The notes beneath the pieces are model-generated. The model saw nothing but the letters and a program-made list of their open reading frames with translations. It was not told the origin of the DNA and made no database searches. A stretch of DNA of 64,000 bases, from assembly GCA_001949185.1 (NCBI GenBank), contig BDGG01000002.1:7616448-7680447 (forward strand). Direction: 5' to 3'. Below, one piece after another: positions 10,193 through 28,366 of this stretch. Source of the DNA: Ramazzottius varieornatus (Eukaryota; Animalia; Tardigrada). A program made the position numbers and the translations under genes. Position 1 is the stretch's first letter. The number at the start of each line of letters is the position of its first letter.

Positions 10193-11578
10193 ATGGCCCG
10201 ATCCTTTTTCGAGTCTGTTTCCCTGGCGGAAGTATGCGCACGTATATTCACCGGGATCGTTATTGTCGCACAATGCTGTCTGCTGGACTATTTCATAATC
10301 ACCGGTCAGCGAGTATGGTTCAGATATCATCAACAATCGTTGATTCTCATCAGTCGTGTTTCTTCCCCGTGTAGGTTCGAACATGTACAGCTTAGGCTGG
10401 ATCGCAGCAGACATCCTAACCCTCGCAGCCTACGTTTATTTCAACGTGAAAGCCATCAAGTATTTCGTGACCATGTACAGCATCGAACCATCACCCACCC
10501 CGAAGAAAGAGATTGGTCTCCTTCCCTACGCGTTCATGACTTGGCTCGTCTACAGCATCTTCCTGGTAGCCAAGGTCGCCGCCATGTTCAAGTCATTCGC
10601 CAGAGAACTCCCGGCCGAAGGCTGGATGGGCACTAACATGATGAAAGTGGCCGTCGGTCTTGCAGCTGCCATTTTCGCGCTGTTGATTGCTGGACACCAC
10701 AGGAGCAAAGCCAGCGAACGACACAAATTCTGCCTGAAGTGGATGCAGGTTCTTGACGCGCTTCTGCATTGTATGGTCCGTCCGGTGTCGCTGTTGACAG
10801 TAATACTTCTCTTTCCTCCGTAGACTCATGTTGTTTTTGAATTGCTGGACACGGTTGAGTTCCTGAGCATCTTATTCATCAATGAGGACCAACTTCTAGT
10901 ATCGTTCGACGTTGAAAATGTGATCATAGCATACGCGTGCATCAACTTGATAATGCCGACCGTAGCGCTCTTTCAGGTAAGAAAAGCCAGCTCTGACGAG
11001 CTTCAGACGCACATTTTGGTTAATAACATTCCAGAATTTGTCTCAGTATGTGGGAGCTCGGAAAATATACTCGCCGAGATTATTCTTTCAAGTGACGCGG
11101 ACCGTCAGGCACTAGTGATGAAAACGTGCGCCACTTGGGACCACTTTTGTGGGGTTTGTTCGCCGAGCTCCCAATTAATTTAGTACACATTTGTTTCTGT
11201 TTGCAGATGAGTAGTGTGAACTTCGCGCGGACCAAGCCAAAAGAGGACTTTACGTTGATCCAGACAACTCTCTCCACGGTACTCGTTAACATCCCGTACG
11301 TGGTTATCCGGATCTACCTATGGCACACCGAGAACTTCACTACAGCTCTGTTCCTTATGAAGAACTTCATAGCCATTGTCAGCAATTTCTGGGAATTAAG
11401 GATTCTCGTTAAGTGCTGTGGGAGAAGGATAAAGCCGGAAAAACCGGATTACAAAGACGACGCCACGGAGACTGCTGACGTCGAGATGGAACAACTTCGG
11501 CAAAGACCGGCAAGAATTGCGGCAAACGGAACTTCGCTAGAACCTAAACAGGAACCTGACTTCATTATCCATGTATGA
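10193..11578 (+). CDS. TMEM121/CECR6-like multipass membrane protein (multi-exon)
   Basis: GWIAADIL, GLLPYAFMTWLVYSIFLVAKVA, LDTVEFLSILF, INLIMPTVALF, VNIPYVVIRIYLWH..LFLMKN motifs typical of the TMEM121 family. Confidence 0.75.
11092..11134. repeat. Palindromic family A core, TMEM121-like intron
   Basis: GTGACGCGG-N25-GTGCGCCAC. Confidence 0.75.
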
Positions 11579-14504: not shown

Positions 14505-15680
14505 TCAGTCATCTTCGCAAGCAACAGGTACCGCGATCTTGCTCTCTTTCCGAGAGTTCCACACAGCGAGGAGCCAATGATGCAGTTCCCACAGGTTGGT
14601 AAGGATACCATAAACATTTTTGATAATGAAAATGAAACTACTCTCCGTAAACTGATGTTCCGTGAACAGGTAGATTCGGATGACTAAGAAGGGAATGATG
14701 CCAAAGACCATGCCGAGAAACTGCTGAAGGACGCTCTAATACGCCGGTGGGTTCTCATGGGCAAAGTTCGTGGCGCTCAACTGGTACAGTCCGACAGAGG
14801 GTAGCAGCAGCTGTATAGTCACGAAGGCCAGAATGGTGCTCTTGACACACTCGGGAATTTTCCTGTGACTCTCGGCAGAGTTTTCGTAAAGGAACTCTAG
14901 CATTTCGACAGAGTCTAACATGTCGAGCATAACATGGTTCTGCATCCAGCGTATGACCGGTTTTTGATGGGTCTTTTTAAGGGCCTTTTTGTGGCTGCTA
15001 ACGACCAGAGCGAACACTACGGCGGTACTGGCGAAGGCGAGTTCCAGCATCTTCGAGCCGAAGAAACAGCTGAGATAAGCTAAGGGCAGTGAGCCTAGCT
15101 TGTACTTTTTCCGGATTGTCCCTACGTCCAGGCTCCTGACTCGGTTGTCCTCTTCATCCCAGTCCAATGCTGAATCCTGTCGCCGTACATCTTTAAGAAA
15201 AACCCGTGCTGATGGTAATCTAGGATGCGAAACGACGGCAAAAGAATTCACCCAAATCGCTGTTTCAAACGGCGCACGCTCTCGACCAACAATAATGAGT
15301 AGGTGCGTCATTCGAGAGAAAGATCTTGGTGAAATCATTCGCCGATGCTCTAAATAGTGAACGATTGTTGTCTTTTCTTTTTGAACCTTTTTCATTGCTG
15401 TTGATGTTGATTTCTAGTTCGTCCAACTCTGTTTCCGGTTGGGAAGAGGCTCCGTTAGAATGGTCGGTCTTCGCGTTCTTTCGTCTGTGGTGGCGTTTAC
15501 GACGGGTAGAAGTTCCATCTGCTCGAGGTGGAACCTGTCGTTTCTCCTACCGGTTTTGTTGGAAGCAGAAATCGGCGAAGAGGTAAGAAATAACGTACAA
15601 TATTAGCACAACGATGTCGGCGACTATCCATCCATAAGCAGCTTTGTTTTAAGCAGCCAGTAAAGCAGCCTGAAGACCCA
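14505..15680 (-). CDS. Second, diverged TMEM121/CECR6-like protein (start not resolved)
   Basis: YGWIVADIVVLIL, LGSLPLAYLS, MLDMLDSVEMLEFL, LLLPSVGLYQLS, IIPFLVIRIYLF..FIIKN; parallels the gene at 10193-11578. Confidence 0.65.
15269..15311. repeat. Palindromic family A core, intron of the TMEM121-like paralogue
   Basis: ACGGCGCAC-N25-GTGCGTCAT with CGGCAAAAGAATTCACC / GGTGAAATCATTCGCCG outer arms. Confidence 0.75.
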
Positions 15681-17798: not shown

Positions 17799-18699
17799 TT
17801 CTTCCTTCTTGATGAATTTATTCTTCTATCTTAAGGTTTGTTGAACCATTATTTTTTGTTTTCTGCACAGGTGCTTCCATATGCACGTCGTTGATCAGGG
17901 ATGACGCGAACTTCGTGCCCAGCCATGCCGGCAAAGTTACCTGCCCGTGTTCTGTTCGTATCTGGACTCCTCGCATCGCTCACCGGACACACAAATGTAC
18001 CTGGGTCTAGGTCTCACAGTTTGGTGGTGGACTGGTCGAAGGAGATAGCATCAATTGCAAACTGACCGTCAAGGACCGCTGTTGCGCTTTGTACGTCACT
18101 GTTGGACACAATGAGGTACACTGCGGGTAAAAAAGTGGCGGATAAGTTTCCGGTGATAAATAAATTGTTCACAGTGATAACCACAGGTCTTCTCTTGAAT
18201 TATGTTCAGTTGCGCTGAAGGAATAGAAAGCATGCAGCGGTTCGACTACAACGTTGGTAACGATGCCTGCTTACTCGTGCTTCCCGAACCGACCACACTG
18301 CAGAAAAACGCTGACTTATCACAAACACAGGTATCAAAAAGCTCGACTTCACAATGTAACCATGTACTGTATAGAACCAGGAAAAACTTTGATTAATATT
18401 GAGCACCAAAAACTTGGAATAGTTTTGGACTGTATAGTTATTACTAGTATTTGTTGTTTGTTGTTACTGGGGTATGGGGAAAGTATGGGCGGGAGTTCAA
18501 CTCAGAACTGACTACGGAATTTTCCACGTCATGTCGTGCTACGGAATCACTAAGGAAAGACGGAATCTGTTTACAGGAAGTGAAAATGACGCAGACGAGC
18601 AGTTTAGTCCTCCTTGACTGGTACACCGCGGTCCGCGGGACGAAAGGCGCTGGGCGAACACTGGGATTTTAGAAAGTGCGTATTTTTCTGTGGGGTCTT

Positions 18700-20350
18700 T
18701 CCTACAATAAGGGATTTCAAAGACAGACCTGGGTCTGGTGGTGTAATTATCCTGTCTGCTCTGGTGGATACCCCCATAAATCAAACAGACCAGAGCCCCC
18801 TAATCTTCTGACTTTGAACACCCCGTTTTGCCACCGCACAGCGAGCAGTTGTAGTTTTAGGCAAGTGCTCGATTTCTGTTCTTTAGTATTATGTATATGT
18901 ATCTGCCCCTCTTTTTATGTTCTTCGACACCATGCCGCAAACAAAACTCCTACCATTCTCTTAAGAATCTGGATCGCAGGATGGAGTTGTCTCGTGTCGG
19001 TTGCAGTTTATTCGGCAAGCAGACGAACCCTGAAGTGTTTATGTAGCCGTGAACTAGAACATAAGACGAAAAGCCTTCTTGAACAAGTCGATAACGTCTT
19101 TTATAAGAGACGGAAGCCTTGTTGGAAGTGTCTAGCAATCATAACCGAACTGGTTTTGATAAAGACAGATCTGAAATCTTCAGCCGCGTCACAACCATCT
19201 TCTTCCCGATGGCGGTGCTAAACTTGGCATCGGTGTCCGTCCACTTGCTATTATCAGTGTCAATGGTTAGAAGTAATGGACGTTTCCGAAAGGGACATGT
19301 CCATCCACATTAACTGGGAACAAGACACGGTATTCTAGACAGGTGAAATGGAAAATGGTGAAACTTGGATTTTTAAACGAGGTGAGTCTAAAAGTGGTGG
19401 AAAAATCTAACTTTCTTAACTTGACATTACCTACCAACAAACCAACTATCAACAACGAACAACCATTTTTCAGTAGACAAGTTGATTGTCTGATGACACT
19501 GACCAGGCTTTTTCCATAGGAAGGCCTGGTCACGTCTTGGTGTCTTGGGTACCTCTGAATTTGCTAGTTCAGACCGAATAGGCAGTGAAGTAGAGATCAC
19601 AATTCGGTCATCAGAAAGGAAAGATAAGACAGAAGTAAAGAAGGGAAGATTTAGCAAGGGACGAGGTTCACCGAGATGACTCTGGCAAAGCGAAATAGAA
19701 ACTGAAAATTTCGACAGCTGGTGGGATTACGAGTCGGTCCCGAGTAGGTCGTAATTACACCGAAGAAACGGTGAAATTTCGTTTTCGGTGGAACCAACAG
19801 CCCAATCGTGTCGTGAAGGTGGAGCCAGTTACACCAGCGCTGTAATCCTACCAGCGGTGTACTTTAAAGTGCCAATGGCTTACAAAGCCTAAGGTGGCTT
19901 GGTGGTGTAATTACAACAGATACTTTGGTGGATACGCCCAGAACACTTTTTTGACCAGTTAGGAAAGCGGTGTGACGGCTTGCTTTGAAAGCCCCGCACT
20001 ACAGGTAAGTACGATCGGAGGAGTATGAGATCTTTGATGTCGGAGGAACCACCATACACTCACCAGTAGGACGAGTAGTGAGAAACTTCGTCATGGAAGG
20101 GAGATTCGAAGGTTTGGAGGGGAGCACTCAGGATGTTGATTGCATCTGGTGTAATTGCGAGTCATTCCGGAGCGACTCGTAATTACACCGAAAGTGTAAT
20201 GTCTGGTGGAATAAATAGGCCGATCGCAAGGGTGTGGGTGGAGCGAATTACACCAGCGTTGTAATTCCACCAGCGGTGTAATCTATCTTTGTAAGCCCTT
20301 ATTAGGGGCTTACAAAGATAGATTACGCGGGACAGGTTTGGGTCCGGGTG
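18700..20350. repeat. Degenerate dispersed repeat copies (GTAATTACACC-rich) in the enlarged ureD intron
   Basis: 19720-19860 resembles 20148-20285 (CGTAATTACACCGAA...TTACACCAGCG.TGTAAT...ACCAGCGGTGTA); 18735-18775 resembles 19900-19940 (GGTGGTGTAATTA...TGGTGGATAC). Confidence 0.55.
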
Positions 20351-20594
20351 CGTGTAAAAAGACCGCGCGGATGGTGGGTGAAATATCTGGTCAACGTGTG
20401 TATCGATCAGCTGATCGCTATCGCTGATCGCTACACATAGCAGCCAAAACGGCGTGTACCGGGGAGATTCTTTACGCGGACCCGGACCATTCTTGTCCCA
20501 ATTCATTGGCACTTTAAAGTAATCAGTCTTTGAAGGCCCTTAATATCTCATCAGCATCACTCACGGTCACGGACTGATGCAGTAGCACGAGGCT

Positions 20595-21233
20595 TAGTGC
20601 TGGGATAAATACGATATATCGTATCTTATCGAAATATATCACATCACAGTGATTCGATATGACAAAAATATCATATCGATATGGACGGAATATCGCTGAG
20701 CGGAATATGATGAATGAAAATATCATATCGCTGTACATCGATATATTTCTGATACATCGATAAATCGCAAACCCGCACTTGAGAATCGGAACTTCGCAAG
20801 TCAATACTCCGGTTCGGTACCGCGCAGGCAGCGCAGCCTCGCCCGTAATGTATCGCGCATATGCATCCAAGTTGACTTCGGAGAAGTGAACAGTCATCGT
20901 ACTTAGGTGCGTAACGACAGACCTTGATAGATTAAGCAACGAACACACTCGCGTACACGAAGACATCTGACCTTTGTTCTGACTCGAACGTAGTGAACGA
21001 CAGCCGTTTGGTTTCTCTTTGGCTCTTTCTTGATTTCGATAGTTTTCAACATGGTACTGGCTTGATATATCGATATATCACTGCAATAAAATTCGATATA
21101 TCAACAATAAAATATCAGAAACGTATCATATCGAAATATCGGTACGTGGTTAATATCTAAAACGAAATATAAATATTGAAAGATATTTATCAGAAAATAT
21201 CAATCGTATTTTATCGTATTTATCCCAGCACTA
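20595..21233. mobile_element. 639-bp non-autonomous hAT-like element
   Basis: 22-bp TIR TAGTGCTGGGATAAATACGATA / TATCGTATTTATCCCAGCACTA; dense subterminal CGATAT/ATATCG repeats; flanks ACGAGGCT vs ACGtcgAGGCT resemble a degenerate 8-bp TSD. Confidence 0.75.
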
Positions 21234-21944
21234 ACGTCGAGGCTTATCAGATGTTGCTCTACTTGCAGGTTACGGACGTGCAATGTGGTCAGCAGAGCCG
21301 ACGAGGAAATCTACCGGGATGTAGTTATCTTCAACGACGACACTTCACCAGAGCTGCGCAAAGTCAGTATGGGAGCCTACCAGGTACCAAGCTCGACATT
21401 GCGCTTTCGGTTCTGAAACCCATCGCTCAAACCATTCTCTCGCTCTATTGGTGTAGGTTTTTGGAAGCTGTGTGATCATCGGGAAAATGGTTGCCGACCG
21501 AATGGCTGACACAATCAGAGAGGCTTTCTACCGGAGTATCTTATGGTATGTGTCTATTTTGTTGTTTCGTCCGCCAGATCAGAAATAGTGTGGACTAACT
21601 GATGGCTTCTGCTGATAGGTAAAAGTGCTTCTGCCGATCAGATCATGACCAGCAGTTCACTCTACACCGACCTTGAGGATAAGAATCTGTGCGGACATGT
21701 TCTTCTCTTCTGCTTTACCTCCACCATTGAGGTATTTTGCTCTTACTCGATGAATGTTTCAAACATCAGACTTTAGTCTTGATCATGCCATGTAACTACA
21801 GGCGTATGAAACCATCTCAGAGGTCCTCAAGCCAATTATGGAGCTTGGGGGAGGCAATCCGTTCGAACGCAGCTTTTAGACACAGCAGAAGCCCGAAAGT
21901 ACAGCCCAGTTGTAGATAGAGAATAACGTAGGATGAAACATTTT

Positions 21945-24900
21945 CTTCTAAAATAGTATCTTTGTGCTAACGGTACGATTTCCGTCGGTGGCGACGTCAG
22001 GTACGTCTTCTCTATTTTTCCGTCTTGTTCTTTCACCAGGTAGACTTTGTGATTGCTGGGATTCACTGCAATAAGCCCGGTAAAATTAAGTTCAATATTT
22101 ACTGACATTTATCCATTTAATTCTTATCGATTCATCCTTGTGTTTGGGAATCGATGTACATTATGATGAATAACAGAAAAATTAATACCTTCAAGCTTGG
22201 GCGTGGCATGGTTGAGAACCATGTCCGCTCTGGTAACACTGCTGCAGTTCCGCACGGCGTACTTCGCCTTCTTGGTCCTAAAGTCCTTGTCCACTCCAGC
22301 CTGCAAAGCGAGAAGCGATCGCATAAAAGAACCAAGAGAAGTCAAGTCGCGTGTTAGCGTATAGAAGTTCTTACTTTAGATGTGAAGAGGATGGAGTTTC
22401 GGGTCGGGCACAAACCGTAAGCGCCGAACATCTTTCTTTGCTGGGCTGGCTCTACTGTCGGAATGGATGCATTAGGCATCCCCATTTGCGCCCAGGCCAC
22501 CTGCAAAAGCCAGCCTGAAACGTAAAGGGACACTTCAAAGCTTCGGGACGGTTTACTTGTCCACCCTTCAGAATCATCTTCGGCTTGGTACCGAAAAAGG
22601 CGGGTTCCCATAGGAAAATATCCGCGAATTTTCCAACCTGAATTCAATCGAACAGTTATTTTATTTCAAACTTCATCGTACCGCTATTTCAATCTTGGAA
22701 TTCATGGCGAACCTCGAGGGAGCCAACTACGCATCCAATGCCAGAGACGATAGCCGGATCGATGGTATACTTGTAATTCGAAGTTGCTTTAATGTATGAA
22801 ATCTAAGGTGCCAAAGGGGCTAAATGTAAGGTGCCAAAGTAAGGTCAAAGGTAACCTTGGCCAAATTTTGCTTGATGGGCTCAAAGTATCCAGCTGTCTT
22901 TTACGTGGAGATCACTCTAAGATCTTACTTTGCTAGTAGCGCTTGGCCCGGAAATTTTCGTTATCACCCTATAAAATACGCCGCGTCAGTCGTACAGGAC
23001 AGAAGTTTCATCCGCCACCATCAAGCTTTTGATGACTCACATGACGCGATCTTACCGTCTCTTCCGGTCATTGCTTTCGAAGAGTCTTCATTTGTCGATT
23101 CATGATTTAGACGCATGACTCGTGATTCGGGAAGTTTGATGCTTTCTTGCTGACTCGTGCGTTGAAGCTCCGGCACAGCTTACCTGAGAATCCGAGCTGA
23201 TGATGGAAATTGCTCCCAGGACGTGGAGAATGTCTTCAGCGGCAATCGTCTCGGCCCGAATACGGCTTCCGGCCAGCGCCGCGTCTTCCATTATGTTTCT
23301 ATCAAAGTCCAATGAAAGAAACACCTGACAAAGACCTATCATGTTAATAAAAGTAACTATTATTTTTACTTGGTCAGATGATGGCAAACCATCAACATGT
23401 CCTGCAACAAAAACAACCCGACTCCGACAACTTTGATGATATCCTAGTGGCACAAACGTAAGATTAAGCCATTGGTTAAGGGAAAACACCCAGGAGAATA
23501 TTGGAGACACAAGACAAAGGCACTAATGGGTGCGTGGCCGCCGCCGGCTCCTTCCGTGTGATAGGCATGGATGGATCGACCATTGACAGCCCGAATCGTA
23601 TCTTCCACACAGGACGATCCTTAATGGTGTCCGTATGGATTGTAATCTATAGTGAAGCCTTATTATTCGCATGTGAACTACTTATGTACAAATTTGACCG
23701 ACAGGATGTACTTATCGGTACCTGGACATCGTACTTGGTGGCCACTTCGAGAGCAGTGTTGATGGTGGCAGGTGTCGTTCCCCAGTCCTCGTGCAACTTC
23801 AAGCTGGAAGCAGAACTGGTGTCAGAGTAGCTGCATGAGATCTTAACAATCATGGACTCAGTTTACCCACCCGATTGCGCCTCCTTCGATCTGCTCGATC
23901 AGCTCCGGAGCCAGTTTGCCCGGCGTGGAACTAGTGTTACCTTTGCCGGTGAACCCGACGTTCGTAGGGAAATTGTCGGTAGCTTGCACCATCATCATAG
24001 AAGAAAAGGGAGAGCTACAAGAACCTACGAGTCAAAACAGAAACCTAGTAAAATTACAACCCAGTTCTCGACCGGAGTGAACGAACAAAAAATCTTTTTC
24101 GCGTTGAGCTTTCTACGGAATCGACCGATTTTTGGCTCTCTATTGACGTACCTTAGATGTTGTGGTCCCGGCGTACATGTTGTTGCGCATGTTCCCGATG
24201 CAGGGCCCTGTGTAAAAGAACCCCGGAGTTAAGTATCGGACCTTGAGTGGGGAATGGAACAACTGTTCTAGGTCTTGCTTACAGTGCCGCCACCTATCAT
24301 AGTGGTTGACCCTGCGGCGATAGCTTCCTTTATTAGCTGCGGGCAGATGAAATGGACATGACAGTCCAGAGCTCCGGCCGTAACTATTTGTCCACCTGCG
24401 GATATGACTTCGGTTCCACACCCCACAATGAGGTGTTCCGATACGCCTTCCATGGCGTCTGGGTTCCCGGCTTTGCCCAAACCGACGATATAGCCATCCT
24501 ACGAGAACGAGAGACGTAGCTAAGGCACCTCAACATGACACTATAAGGAAAAGATGATATACATACCTTGATCCCAATGTCGCACTTGACAATCCCAGTA
24601 ACCGCATCAAAGACCAGTGCGTTGATAATGACAGTGTCCAGCGTCGAAGGTTCGTCCTTCTTTTTGACGCCGACAACACCGACAGCTTGGCCCATTCCAT
24701 CCCGAATAACCTACAAACAGATATGATGGGTTTCTTCTGCCTGAAAAATCCTTGCTACGTTTATGTGGGCAACGGCTAATGATTCACCAGGAGCCTTATC
24801 TCAAGTGGCGCACTTTCTAATTGTCATTGGCTCAGAGTGTGCGCCACTAGAGGCAACGATCTGGTTGAATTCATGAGTCGGCGTCCCGTTTATCAGATTA

Positions 24901-26450
24901 GAAAGACCATGACTTTTGCTGTCATACTGTACTTTGCCAGAGCCGAACATGCATCCGTCTGCGTAGGCGCCCAAATCTTTCTCCACCTCGATGAGAAGTC
25001 CAATGTCACCCAGCCTGATTTTGTCCCCAACCGTCGGTCCAGATGAAGCGGCGTAAAGTTCGCGAGGCATGGTGGCTGCCTTGACAGCATACTCTTCTGC
25101 CTGTGCTAAATGTCGAAAGCCATGTTTCTTCAGCTTTGAAGGAGAATAAAACACCAAAGTCAAGCGGTACACAAATATTGAGCTCAGTAAGTTCTGCGAC
25201 GGAAAACCGGCGGATTGTACCTACCTTACGAAGAACGCGGTGGACGTTTTCCTTCTCGACCGGTCCATCGCACATTCCGTTTCCTCCACGAATAATTTGA
25301 GTTCCGCCGATCTCTGTGAGAGGAACTCGTCTTTGCCCACCAGGTTCAAAGCGTATAGCAGTGCCTGCTGGGATGTCGAGGCGCATTCCATATGCGCGAG
25401 CTCGGTCGAACTCCAGGGCTCGGTTGGCTTCGATGAAGTGGTAATGACTTCCAATCTGTATCGGTCTAAAAACAAGCAACAAAAACAAGCTGTCTTTCCA
25501 ACAACGTCATCCCCCACCGATACATTAGAAATGATACTCACACCGATCACAGTGGCTCTGGACTACAAGGATGTCTTTCCGCCGGTTGACGTTCACCTCG
25601 ATGGGCGGCGCGTCAGCCAGGACGAATTCACCCGGGTAGTGAGCATCTAGGTCTTCTTCGTCGTCTTCCTCGAAATGTTCCTGCAACGGGAAAAGAGCAG
25701 CGTATATTTTCTTAAGGGTGAAGTCCTACGTCAGAGCTATGGCGTTACGATGCTGCCATCTTTATGTACGCCCTGTTGGAAGACCGCTAAGTCAGGAACC
25801 GGCAGGAAACTGCCGTAGAGGGCCAGATCGAGGTCGCCGTCGAGGAGACTAATAGGGTTGTGGACGGTAATCAACTTGGTCCCATCAGGAAAAGTTGCTT
25901 CAATCTGCACTTCGGCGATCATCTGGGGCACGCCTTGCATTACTTGGTTCACGCCTGCGGAACAGAGAAACAGTCTGACAGAGAGAAAAATGACAACAAT
26001 TCTTCCAAGGCCAAAGAGTCCCAGAACTCACGCAGAGACTGTAACGATCTGTACTCTTCAGTCCTTACCCAGCATTGTCCCGCCAATTCCCATAATCTGG
26101 GCCAGGGTTTTCTTTCCATCCCGTACCAGCTCTTGCAGCTGCAGGTAAGAATCAATAATATCTACAGTATATCTTCCCAGTCTGACGCCATCAAGTTTTA
26201 CTTCGCTCTCCGACATGCAGAACTATCAATGCATCTTCACTGGGAACAAATAGCCACTCCGGAAAGACCGGATGCGGTGTTTCTAAAACCGGACCAGGAG
26301 TGCTTAGTTACCTGTGATGCTATAGGGACGACCGCTTCTGGGTGGTTCAACTTGCATCCTGTGCTAAACCTGCGAAAGCTACTAAGAACTAGAAACGCCA
26401 AGTCTCACCTTCTGCTGGTGAGTCCAACGATACCGTTTACGCTTTGTTCG
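21945..26450 (-). pseudogene. ure: Urease, single-chain eukaryotic type (gamma-beta-alpha fusion), many exons, disrupted
   Basis: Gamma: [27 protein letters not shown]. Beta: [32 protein letters not shown]. Alpha: [113 protein letters not shown]. Frameshift near 23618 and missing conserved blocks. Confidence 0.9.
24805..24847. repeat. Palindromic family A core, urease intron
   Basis: GTGGCGCAC-N25-GTGCGCCAC. Confidence 0.85.
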
Positions 26451-26990
26451 CCTGCTGCAAACAAGTCTCGCGACCAGTTAGCACTCTGACGTTACATCTG
26501 ATGGAGCTTCCGTGAAATTGGCCGCCGTTGGCAATTGGGTGGTACTAGTTCTAGTGAAATCAGGACAACATCCTCGTTCGGTCTGCCCTTTGTACCGTAA
26601 TTCCGCTAAGGAAGGTAGGGTAAGACGCAGCGGGCTTTAGTGTATCAGCCAATGTCCCTTAAAGTGCTTCATTTCAGAAGGTTCTGATTGGTGGACTGGT
26701 CGATATCGTCACGCTATCCGCCCGTGCATCAAATCCACCGAATTACGGTTACGAAGGTCATCTAGTCCACAATCTCAATTTCTCATATGTTTCAACGAGA
26801 TAAGCGAAAGACTGCCTTGAGTGGGACCAGCTTGTGTACACGCCTGCAAGACTGCAATTCCAGCTAAGGTTCTGACGGTCAACCGCCCCAACCATTCGAC
26901 TGTGAGATTTGTTCTGGGCCGTTCGGGATCCGCAGTGCAATGGGACAAAGCGGCAATGTTGCCCGTTTCGAGAAAGGTACGTCTGTTTCC

Positions 26991-28304
26991 ATGTCGGGTA
27001 AACCTACCTGACAGCTTACGCCTTTCTGTTGAATCATTGCCATTTGCAGGAGGCAGTGGCTGAAAGCTACCCTTCTGTTGTGCAAAGTTTACACGTGAGT
27101 TTTAAAACCGGTTTTCTTAGATCATCATCACGAACATGGCCACGGTGGCGAGCACGGCCACACCCATGAGATTCTTGGAGGACCCGGAAACTACGACCAA
27201 CGGGAAATGCCAAATGTTGGTCGCAGTGACTGGTCAGAGGTATGAGTACTCCACGTGACACTGTCTAAAGACTGAGACTGGCTTGTGGAAAATAATTCTG
27301 TATTGGTTTCAGAGAGCGTTCACCGCTGGGATTGGAGGACCAGTTGGATCGGGCAAGACCGCCATGGTATTGGCTCTTTGCCGATATTTGCGGGAACGGC
27401 AGAACTTATGCGTCGTGACCAACGACATTTTCACACGGTACACACAGTTTCCTCGATTTTAGATGTGTTCTCTACTGCTGGCTTTCACTTACCAATTCGC
27501 AGGAAAGACTGAGAGTTCCTGGTCCGCAACGAAGCTTTACCCGTCGAGCGTATGCGAGCCGTGGAGACTGGTGGATGTCCACATGCCGCAGTTCGAGAGG
27601 TACGTGCACGTGAGTCTTTTCCGTCAAGTTTCACGCCCTGAAAGGAAGCAAAAGAGCTTGTTCGATTTTTTAGGATTACTCGCTAAATATGGAATCCGTG
27701 AAAGAACTAACCAAGAAATTCAAACCGGAAATCGTTCTTCTCGAATCCGGAGGTGACAACCTGGCCGCCAACTTCAGTCGCGAGCTGGCTGATTACATCA
27801 TCTACATCCTCGATGTTACCGGTACTAAATACTTTTCATACCACTTACTGCATTCTGACATCAAAAGGAAATAGCAAAGAAATAGGGGAGCTGGGCAAGC
27901 GGATGAGACCAGATCGTTCGCCCGAGGTGGCGCACGTTTCCGGCCAATAACAGCGAAAACGTGCGCCACTAGAGGAAACGATGTGGTTCAATTTCGTTTC
28001 TCACGTCCTGTTTCTTGAAGGTGGCGACAAAATTCCGCGAAAAGTAGGACCTGGGATAACTCAAAGCGACTTGTTAATCATCAATAAGACCGACCTAGCT
28101 GAGGCTGTCGGAGCTAGTCTGGAAGTGATGAGTCCTGACGCTGGGATCATGCGCCAAAACGGACCCACCATTTTTGCTCAAGTCAAAAACATGATTGGTA
28201 TCCCTGAAACTGCCAATTTAATTCTTGACGCGGCCAAAGCAGTTAAAATTCATACTACTGTTCAAAAAATACTCCTGCTCAAATTCACTGATACTGTTAA
28301 TTAA
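26991..28304 (+). pseudogene. ureG: Urease accessory GTPase UreG (eukaryotic His-rich N-terminus), with an in-frame stop
   Basis: HHHEHGHGGEHGHTHEILGGPG..REMP...[24 protein letters not shown]; KD*EFL (TGA 27510-27512); [13 protein letters not shown]; ESGGDNLAANFSRELADY; GGDKIPRKVGPGITQSDLLIINKTD. Confidence 0.9.
27927..27969. repeat. Palindromic family A core, ureG intron
   Basis: GTGGCGCAC-N25-GTGCGCCAC. Confidence 0.85.
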
Positions 28305-28366
28305 TAATTTTGCAATCAAAAGGTATGAAACTAATGATAAATATTGAATAAATATTAAATAAGATA

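Follow-up and report, generated by a model that had tools for sequence, protein, structure and literature searches.

The stretch of Ramazzottius varieornatus DNA considered here (64,000 nucleotides, positions 7,616,448 to 7,680,447 of the forward strand of contig BDGG01000002.1, GenBank assembly GCA_001949185.1; hereafter the window) carries three genes of the urease pathway side by side. These are ureD on the plus strand (approximately 17871–21879), a single-chain urease gene on the minus strand (approximately 21900–26502) and ureG on the plus strand (26940–28304), with ureD and urease convergent and urease and ureG head-to-head. All three are contained in 10.4 kb, uninterrupted by any other gene, an arrangement that fits a eukaryotic metabolic gene cluster (at least three non-homologous genes of one pathway). 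The left flank is a gene of the CECR6/TMEM121 family and the right flank an M16 peptidase resembling insulin-degrading enzyme, both ordinary animal genes. An earlier reading made from the letters alone (the sequence-only reading) had proposed these positions, orientations and metazoan flanks, and searches with tblastn, Pfam, NCBIfam and a local UreD hidden Markov model (HMM) agree with it. Its description of the gene anatomy stands; what it missed, and what is described below, is the disruption of every gene.

RNA contigs from four runs (X4, X6, X7 and X16), belonging to four studies dated 2016, 2017, 2021 and 2023, were aligned to positions 22350–28320. The stretch is contained in 20 public runs of one organism, the smaller of which look like transcriptomes. 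Zero differing letters and zero insertions or deletions were seen between the contigs and the window over the aligned region. The urease transcript was assembled in all four studies and the ureG transcript in three, with contig depths that are not readable as expression levels. Fifteen joints were listed, 12 in urease and three in ureG, and the intron ends are GT..AG in every case; the RNA data hold nine further joints, which may affect minor isoforms and the inner structure of urease exon 14. For ureD, the AG/GT boundaries of exon 2 were read in the sequence. A palindromic element lies in ureG intron 5 (27822–28020; arms 27927–27942 and 27954–27969), and a related one in the urease intron at 24711–24932 (arms within 24782–24870). 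At least 44 other copies of the ureG element, 74–88% identical, were found on 13 other contigs and elsewhere on the same contig. The GT-AG introns and the host element in the urease and ureG introns, both pointed out in the sequence-only reading, are therefore real. The cluster is integrated in the host genome and contamination is excluded, because its joints are spliced in the RNA of four studies, its introns hold a host repeat and its flanks are animal genes. As a separate observation, the dispersed repeat (27850–28015 and 24782–24870) is about 100 nucleotides long, resembles a miniature inverted-repeat transposable element and has the core GTGGCGCACGTTT...AAACGTGCGCCAC; recurring translations of open reading frames (ORFs; ...ARFR..P.ACATW...) indicate that the peptidase and TMEM121 genes nearby also have it in their introns.

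The urease gene (21900–26502, minus strand) is a transcribed pseudogene of approximately 18 exons. In tblastn searches with the urease of the tardigrade Hypsibius exemplaris (P0196, 854 residues), residues 22–852 were covered by colinear pieces running from 26374 down to 21953. Successive single exons match the Pfam families Urease_gamma, Urease_beta, Urease_alpha and Amidohydro_1, and the NCBIfam urease alpha models also match, so that one gene holds the domains in the order gamma, beta, alpha of the single-chain eukaryotic enzyme (EC 3.5.1.5). Spliced urease contigs of 1.8–2.3 kb are present in X4, X6, X7 and X16. The X6 contig has a loose end at 26502 that we read as the reverse complement of the template-switch oligo, and on that reading it marks the 5′ end of the urease transcript. 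The junction CHHLT-K|NIMED was found to be cleanly spliced in RNA (intron 23299–23369); the proposal that a coding "DFDR" preceded NIMED, with a broken junction after CHHL, was rejected on the basis of the same joints. Exon-sized ORFs 76% identical to urease exon 8 were also found on two ENA contigs (P0001 and P0151, of 59,983 and 15,358 bp). They continue past ...GGGT into VSEVFR..., suggesting an intron at the same position in a relative with an intact exon.

The reading frame of this transcript is broken at many points. Exon 1 (26312–26502), shown by the length of the X6 contig to be unspliced over that span, has no usable start: its sole upstream ATG (26497) is directly followed by TAA, TGA stands in the coding frame at 26407–26405, and the remnant of the N-terminus, VLTGRE (HLSPRE in Hypsibius), is in a different frame from the coding one. 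Exon 4 (25542–25680) ends in a doubled GT donor (CG GT GTGAGT), of which the second GT is used. Contig coordinates in the four runs leave 139 letters for it between exons 3 and 5, where the in-frame donor would give 137, and exon 5 is out of frame by +2. Exon 10 begins with 25 extra nucleotides (24000–24024) taken in from an upstream acceptor, with a TAG at 24017–24015 and a +1 frameshift; the joint 24022/24150, which removes intron 24025–24151, was seen in four runs. Three lesions are gathered in exon 12 (23370–23646), which the contigs of four runs cross continuously as a single 277-nucleotide exon with no differing letters. The first is a 1-nucleotide deletion at 23622–23615 (TI-K/GSSCVED). 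The second is a former intron of 84 nucleotides (23527–23444) whose first two letters are AT and not GT; it stays in the RNA and closes with an in-frame TAG (23446–23444). The third is a loss of 17 codons, in which a 21-nucleotide remnant (23422–23402) replaces the invariant block PSST.PTRP...NT..E, present in all 28 eukaryotic ureases compared. The too-short stretch is bordered by NCBIfam positions 255–283 and 327–364, and the length of exon 12 is incompatible with the frames at its two ends.

Damage continues in exons 13–14 (22713–23298), for which the RNA gives pieces at 23055–23298 and joints at 22967/23055 and 22634/22710. In exon 13 the former donor that follows ...SSDSQ (23183) is ignored and the transcript continues into stops, some 24 codons (AMGRIGEV...) are lost or degenerate, and a TAG follows GDNENFRAKRY in exon 14 (22935–22933), inside which additional joints may exist. 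At the C-terminus the conserved RYFLF-stop reads RYYF and is followed by at least 17 more codons. With no usable ATG and with frameshifts and stops inside transcribed exons, the urease mRNA contains no translatable ORF. Of the invariant motifs at the active site and the nickel site most survive, but the PSST.PTRP...NT..E block is gone, and substitutions have occurred at approximately 15 other columns that do not vary among the 28 eukaryotic ureases (LHDLGAIS, for instance, has V in place of D, and RLARG has become RFSTG).

The ureG gene (26940–28304) consists of six exons, the first ending at 26976 and holding an ATG at 26940, the others at 27121–27239, 27313–27437, 27503–27599, 27674–27821 and 28021–28304. 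The RNA joints 26974/27119, 27237/27311 and 27597/27672 were each seen across three runs. They place the start in the upstream exon, separated by a 144-nucleotide intron from the His-rich exon, and a start within the His-rich exon was accordingly rejected. Four exons match TIGR00101 at positions 4–40, 45–73, 74–122 and 125–191 of 199, in order, each below the whole-protein cut-off as expected for pieces, and the P-loop reads GPVGSGKT, so that the UreG model is represented over its length. The frame is interrupted by a TGA at 27510–27512 (...TRKD*EFLVRN), near TIGR00101 position 44, where Mytilus UreG has Trp and a bacterial UreG has Gly; the whole-genome scan also reports one TGA inside the ureG match. 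Among the acceptors near this TGA, as read in the sequence, none restores the frame. In addition, the conserved RKGGPG is altered to RKVGPG. Exons 4–6 are 74–86% identical to Mytilus UreG, and the signature DYSLNME..V..LT.KF is common to both. The N-terminus had looked fungal-like in the sequence-only reading, a resemblance that does not survive comparison: a verrucomicrobial UreG has the same His-rich N-terminus, and the comparable exons are close to the mussel protein. A search for tardigrade UreG returned, among the matches listed, one animal protein (Mytilus "ureG", P0396), all others being bacterial or environmental.

Two of these sequences deserve description in their own right. P0396 (Mytilus edulis, 321 residues) lacks the P-loop N-terminus and consists of two tandem copies of the last two thirds of UreG, which is probably an artefact of annotation or assembly. 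A verrucomicrobial metagenome-assembled genome (L002:7521–8237) encodes a UreG with a His-rich N-terminus (MHHHHHHGEHGHTHE...) whose identity to individual exons of the tardigrade gene is 61–83%; His-rich UreG of the "eukaryote type" therefore also occurs outside eukaryotes. The closest bacterial matches are dominated by bacteria of the Planctomycetes–Verrucomicrobia–Chlamydiae (PVC) group.

The region between the divergent urease and ureG genes (26503–26939) includes the ureG 5′ untranslated region and likely holds a shared or bidirectional promoter. A plus-strand RNA contig of run X6 covers 26676–26923, and 80 further letters of that contig map elsewhere. Two low-depth contigs of run X4 (26112–26341 and 26312–26651) are unspliced across urease intron 1 and extend upstream of the urease 5′ end at about 26502; divergent transcription possibly overlaps there. 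At the other end of the urease gene, the 3′ ends of ureD and urease stand tail to tail no more than about 25 bp apart (21877–21902), and their transcripts may overlap.

The ureD gene was recognized piece by piece. Its exon with the GGGLVEGD motif (17871–18126) matches Pfam UreD over 18011–18127 (E 6.6e-6) and contains an in-frame TAG at 18008–18010. No start codon was found in the frame of this exon, and a further exon upstream is therefore presumed. Exon 2 (CAEGIESMQRFDYNVGNDACLLVLPEPTTLQKNADLSQTQ; 18210–18330) matches Pfam UreD positions 45–79 (E 2.5e-5) and positions 104–143 of the local HMM. On these two single exons Pfam UreD scores 26.8 and 24.9 bits, each set against a whole-protein cut-off of 27. 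The whole-genome Pfam UreD scan gave nothing at E<=0.001, the exons being too short when scored against the whole genome. The local HMM was built from 21 bacterial UreDs, with opposite-strand scores as a control; four plus-strand pieces reached 21.1, 14.8, 7.7 and 7.2 bits, and the best minus-strand score was 2.3. When the TAG at 18008–18010 is read through as X, the alignment extends upstream (SVRIWTPR...) and the score rises by 10.6 bits, from 21.3 to 31.9. Of 200 shuffled versions of the upstream part, only 2 reached the read-through score, and the X aligns to a consensus Tyr. Exon 3 (18577–18675) carries a 7-nucleotide tandem duplication (CCGCGGT CCGCGGG, 18626–18639) that shifts the frame. 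The frame changes between ...LLDWYTA and SAGRKALGEHWDFRK, the gene being split as LLDWYTA | SAGRKALGEHWDF, where a bacterial UreD reads LLDWFTSGRHGCGERWAF without interruption. The two halves match adjacent, overlapping HMM positions (142–166 and 159–174) in different frames with one base between them, and the junction of exons 3 and 4 is in frame (AA|G TTA...), as read from the sequence. With a stop inside a continuous exon and a frameshifting duplication, ureD has no intact frame.

Putative downstream exons of ureD are placed within 21269–21879, at about 21269–21383 (LRTCNVV...), about 21457–21545 (VFGSCVIIGK...) and a last one including 21805–21876 (...GGGNPFERSF). Their HMM scores are weak (1.1, -0.1 and 3.6 bits), yet the pieces stand in order (HMM 174–212, 216–233 and 269–291), with the C-terminus at about 21876. 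A search for tardigrade UreD returned only bacterial or environmental sequences among the 120 matches listed. A short open frame in the large ureD intron (19339–19407, plus strand; GEMENGETWIFKRGESK) resembles the GR...GE.W.F motif of exon 3. On the bacterial UreD HMM it scores 5.4 bits, compared with at most 2.3 on the opposite strand, and it might be a decayed copy of that exon or a chance likeness.

The remaining accessory gene, ureF, is absent from the window, as the sequence-only reading had stated, and the genome search that it proposed located one copy on another contig. There Pfam UreF (PF01730) scores 54.2 bits against a cut-off of 23.3, and a TAG (G000:C3:3379065–3379067) aligned to the invariant Glu of the consensus fPtGgFAhSsGLE breaks the frame. 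No loci other than these came up when urease alpha, UreG, UreF and UreD were sought in the whole genome (200 contigs, 55,842,812 bases), and each gene is single-copy. No member of the NicO family of nickel transporters was found, although the exon-by-exon search is weak and gives no evidence of absence. No UreE was seen in the family searches, a likeness to plants and fungi, though no search aimed at UreE was made.

Comparison with other ureases bears on where the pathway came from. Vertebrate, fly and nematode models are not known to have urease, and the sequence-only reading had implied that the enzyme is exceptional in animals. That implication is contradicted by annotation: full-length single-chain ureases are annotated in cnidarians (corals and Nematostella), molluscs (scallops, mussels and gastropods), annelids (Capitella), brachiopods (Lingula), echinoderms (crinoids, sea urchins and brittle stars), hemichordates (acorn worms), amphioxus, priapulids (Priapulus), chelicerates (horseshoe crab, spiders and ticks) and the two tardigrades Hypsibius and Paramacrobiotus. 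In a FastTree tree of 28 eukaryotic ureases, from which the R. varieornatus exons were left out as too short for placement, the 18 animal ureases form one clade (support 96) with cnidarians branching first, and the tardigrade ureases (Hypsibius and Paramacrobiotus) group with those of chelicerates (support 95–96). The R. varieornatus gene is itself nearest to the tardigrades. Its summed match scores are 1043 bits to Hypsibius, 914 to Paramacrobiotus and 655–778 to eight other eukaryotes, and over 668 aligned columns the identity of its exon peptides is 65.1% with Hypsibius and 63.6% with Paramacrobiotus, against 57–59% with other animals, 56% with a plant, 52% with a chytrid and 54% with an alveolate urease. 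The tree and these matches do not place the gene in any donor clade. Of the two origins left open by the sequence-only reading, ancestral retention is the one favoured, and acquisition from a microbial eukaryote is unsupported. Vertical descent of the pathway from an animal ancestor is the reading that these comparisons support.

The same alignments indicate that the R. varieornatus urease has been under relaxed constraint and has diverged faster than its relatives. It is 6–13 points less identical to every outgroup than Hypsibius or Paramacrobiotus are; identity to Nematostella, for example, is 57.2% for R. varieornatus and 70.6% and 68.6% for the two relatives. Changes at invariant columns number approximately 15 in R. 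varieornatus, 2 in Hypsibius and 0 in Paramacrobiotus, with 0–5 in most members of the panel.

Taken together, the locus is very probably the relic of an ordinary animal urease pathway that was inherited vertically and lost in this eutardigrade lineage, from which no active urease can be produced. Its structural gene is a single-chain urease, with the chaperone genes ureD and ureG for nickel insertion beside it in a cluster of 10 kb and a short upstream region common to the divergent urease and ureG. The pathway would have been given up in this lineage; urease, ureD, ureG and ureF each carry stops, frameshifts or splice-site damage, with no second copies in reserve. The urease and ureG promoters and most splice sites still work, and spliced, untranslatable mRNAs are made as a result. 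Urease may have died before its helpers, since it carries at least eight lesions and each helper one or two; this suggests that the enzyme was lost first and that the chaperones drifted afterwards.

Several points weigh against this interpretation. Many catalytic motifs of the urease remain intact, and its decay is therefore incomplete. The exon 4 donor lesion was deduced from the arithmetic of contig coordinates, and the structure of exon 14 is based on joints of which nine are outside those listed. Contigs lose rare isoforms, and a minor transcript could use the in-frame donor of exon 4 or another acceptor at exon 10; such an isoform would not cure the 1-nucleotide deletion, the loss of 17 codons, the missing start or the ureG TGA. 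The 3′ exons of ureD are weakly supported, the RNA alignment covered urease and ureG, and the comparisons of UreD, UreF and UreG drew on proteins from outside the tardigrades. The RNA and DNA data are probably from one laboratory strain, and the lesions may therefore not be fixed across the species.

Beyond the loss itself, it may be asked how old the arrangement is. We infer that the cluster is ancestral; the broader proposal, that ureD, urease and ureG with their divergent promoter region form an ancient animal metabolic cluster conserved in other invertebrates and dismantled here with the structural gene first and the chaperones after, is put forward tentatively and is rather unlikely on present evidence. 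In a limited literature collection, no report turned up of a tardigrade urease or of animal urease genes that are linked.

Other explanations fare worse. The transcripts might have been kept for a new role, as regulatory non-coding RNAs or as the source of a shortened UreG peptide, about 95 residues long and with the P-loop, given that they assemble in four studies (urease) and three (ureG) despite premature stops that normally invite nonsense-mediated decay. Nothing indicates a new function, persistent transcription is common in young unitary pseudogenes and the contig depths say nothing of abundance, and such a role is very improbable. Horizontal acquisition, by this tardigrade or by tardigrades as a group, from a bacterium, a fungus or some other microbial eukaryote is suggested by the operon-like adjacency of three pathway genes, by the His-rich N-terminus of UreG and exons 57–83% identical to a verrucomicrobial UreG, and by the history of horizontal-transfer claims in tardigrades (PMC5034306). 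It finds very little credence when the animal urease clade mirrors animal relationships, the urease is of the fused eukaryotic type with approximately 17 introns, the ureG is at least as close to that of a mollusc in a protein strongly conserved everywhere, and the genes lie on different strands with separate transcripts and so form no operon.

A working, operon-like nickel and urea unit that makes active urease, as the sequence-only reading had envisaged, is barely conceivable. Transcription of urease and ureG with most introns correctly spliced, the survival of most urease catalytic motifs and a ureG that is complete and in order but for one codon would suit it. It cannot accommodate a urease mRNA without a usable start, a single urease exon in which the RNA contigs of four studies show one nucleotide deleted, the old intron kept with its TAG and 17 codons of an invariant block missing, or the TGA of ureG, the TAG and frameshift of ureD and the TAG of the unlinked ureF, with no spare copies. 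Nor is the cluster an operon in the sense of one strand and one transcript, the strands alternating +, -, + and urease and ureG having separate spliced transcripts with their own 5′ ends. Equally hard to credit is the suggestion that the genes are intact and the lesions assembly or sequencing errors. Assembly errors do typically take the form of one lost base or a short duplication, but the RNA contigs of the four studies agree letter for letter with the window over ureG exon 4 and the lesions of urease, more than 12 independent lesions of varied kinds affect four genes on two contigs, and invariant residues are substituted as well.

Outside the cluster, two pieces of the CECR6/TMEM121 family in opposite orientation (11126–11578, plus strand, and 14736–15395, minus strand) flank a leucine-rich-repeat gene at 12.4–14.1 kb and are perhaps two paralogues of TMEM121. 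A copy of the palindromic repeat is read through by the ORF on the minus strand (14736–15395).

The relic reading of the locus has consequences for how animal urease is viewed. The enzyme is neither exotic nor foreign to animals; it is an ancestral enzyme kept by many invertebrates, for which vertebrate, fly and nematode models mislead. Loss of a whole small pathway is documented: an extremotolerant tardigrade has disabled genes for an enzyme and three chaperones, decay has reached different stages in the different genes, and urease is intact in the animal's relatives. The published screen for lost genes in the R. varieornatus genome used model-organism genes as its reference (PMC5034306), and the loss of the urease pathway was therefore invisible to it. 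Transcribed and spliced pseudogene fragments of this kind may be called genes by automated pipelines, which is a warning for annotation. Three pathway genes linked this closely are uncommon in an animal, and the locus could serve as a test case for the ancestry of such clusters and the way in which they break up.

Among known systems, the closest are the ureases of Hypsibius exemplaris (P0196) and Paramacrobiotus metropolitanus (P0216), of the jack bean type. They have the same single-chain gamma-beta-alpha order and share with the R. varieornatus gene the tardigrade-specific KYTI.PAIVSGIG..VGS.EVGKFAD and NSILF; unlike them, the R. varieornatus gene has no start, at least three frameshifts, several in-frame stops, a 17-codon deletion and a faster divergence. 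The accessory genes resemble UreD (PF01774), UreF (PF01730) and UreG (TIGR00101) of plants and fungi in having family matches in order and in the eukaryote-style His-rich N-terminus of UreG. Urease accessory genes are usually unlinked in plants and fungi, whereas here ureD and ureG adjoin urease with ureF alone elsewhere, and each carries a nonsense or frameshift mutation. Bacterial urease operons (ureDABCEFG, including verrucomicrobial and planctomycete loci) likewise bring structural and accessory genes together, and UreG is 61–83% identical per exon, but the tardigrade cluster occupies both strands and has separate spliced transcripts, fused subunits, introns and an animal phylogeny. Unitary pseudogenes and the co-elimination of pathways are known from cases such as GULO and vitamin C synthesis in primates. 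As in losses of the GULO type, a single-copy ancestral gene has been disabled in one lineage and kept by relatives, partner genes decay too and transcription continues; the urease pathway of R. varieornatus differs in that four members of a small pathway stand at different stages of decay, three of them in one cluster.

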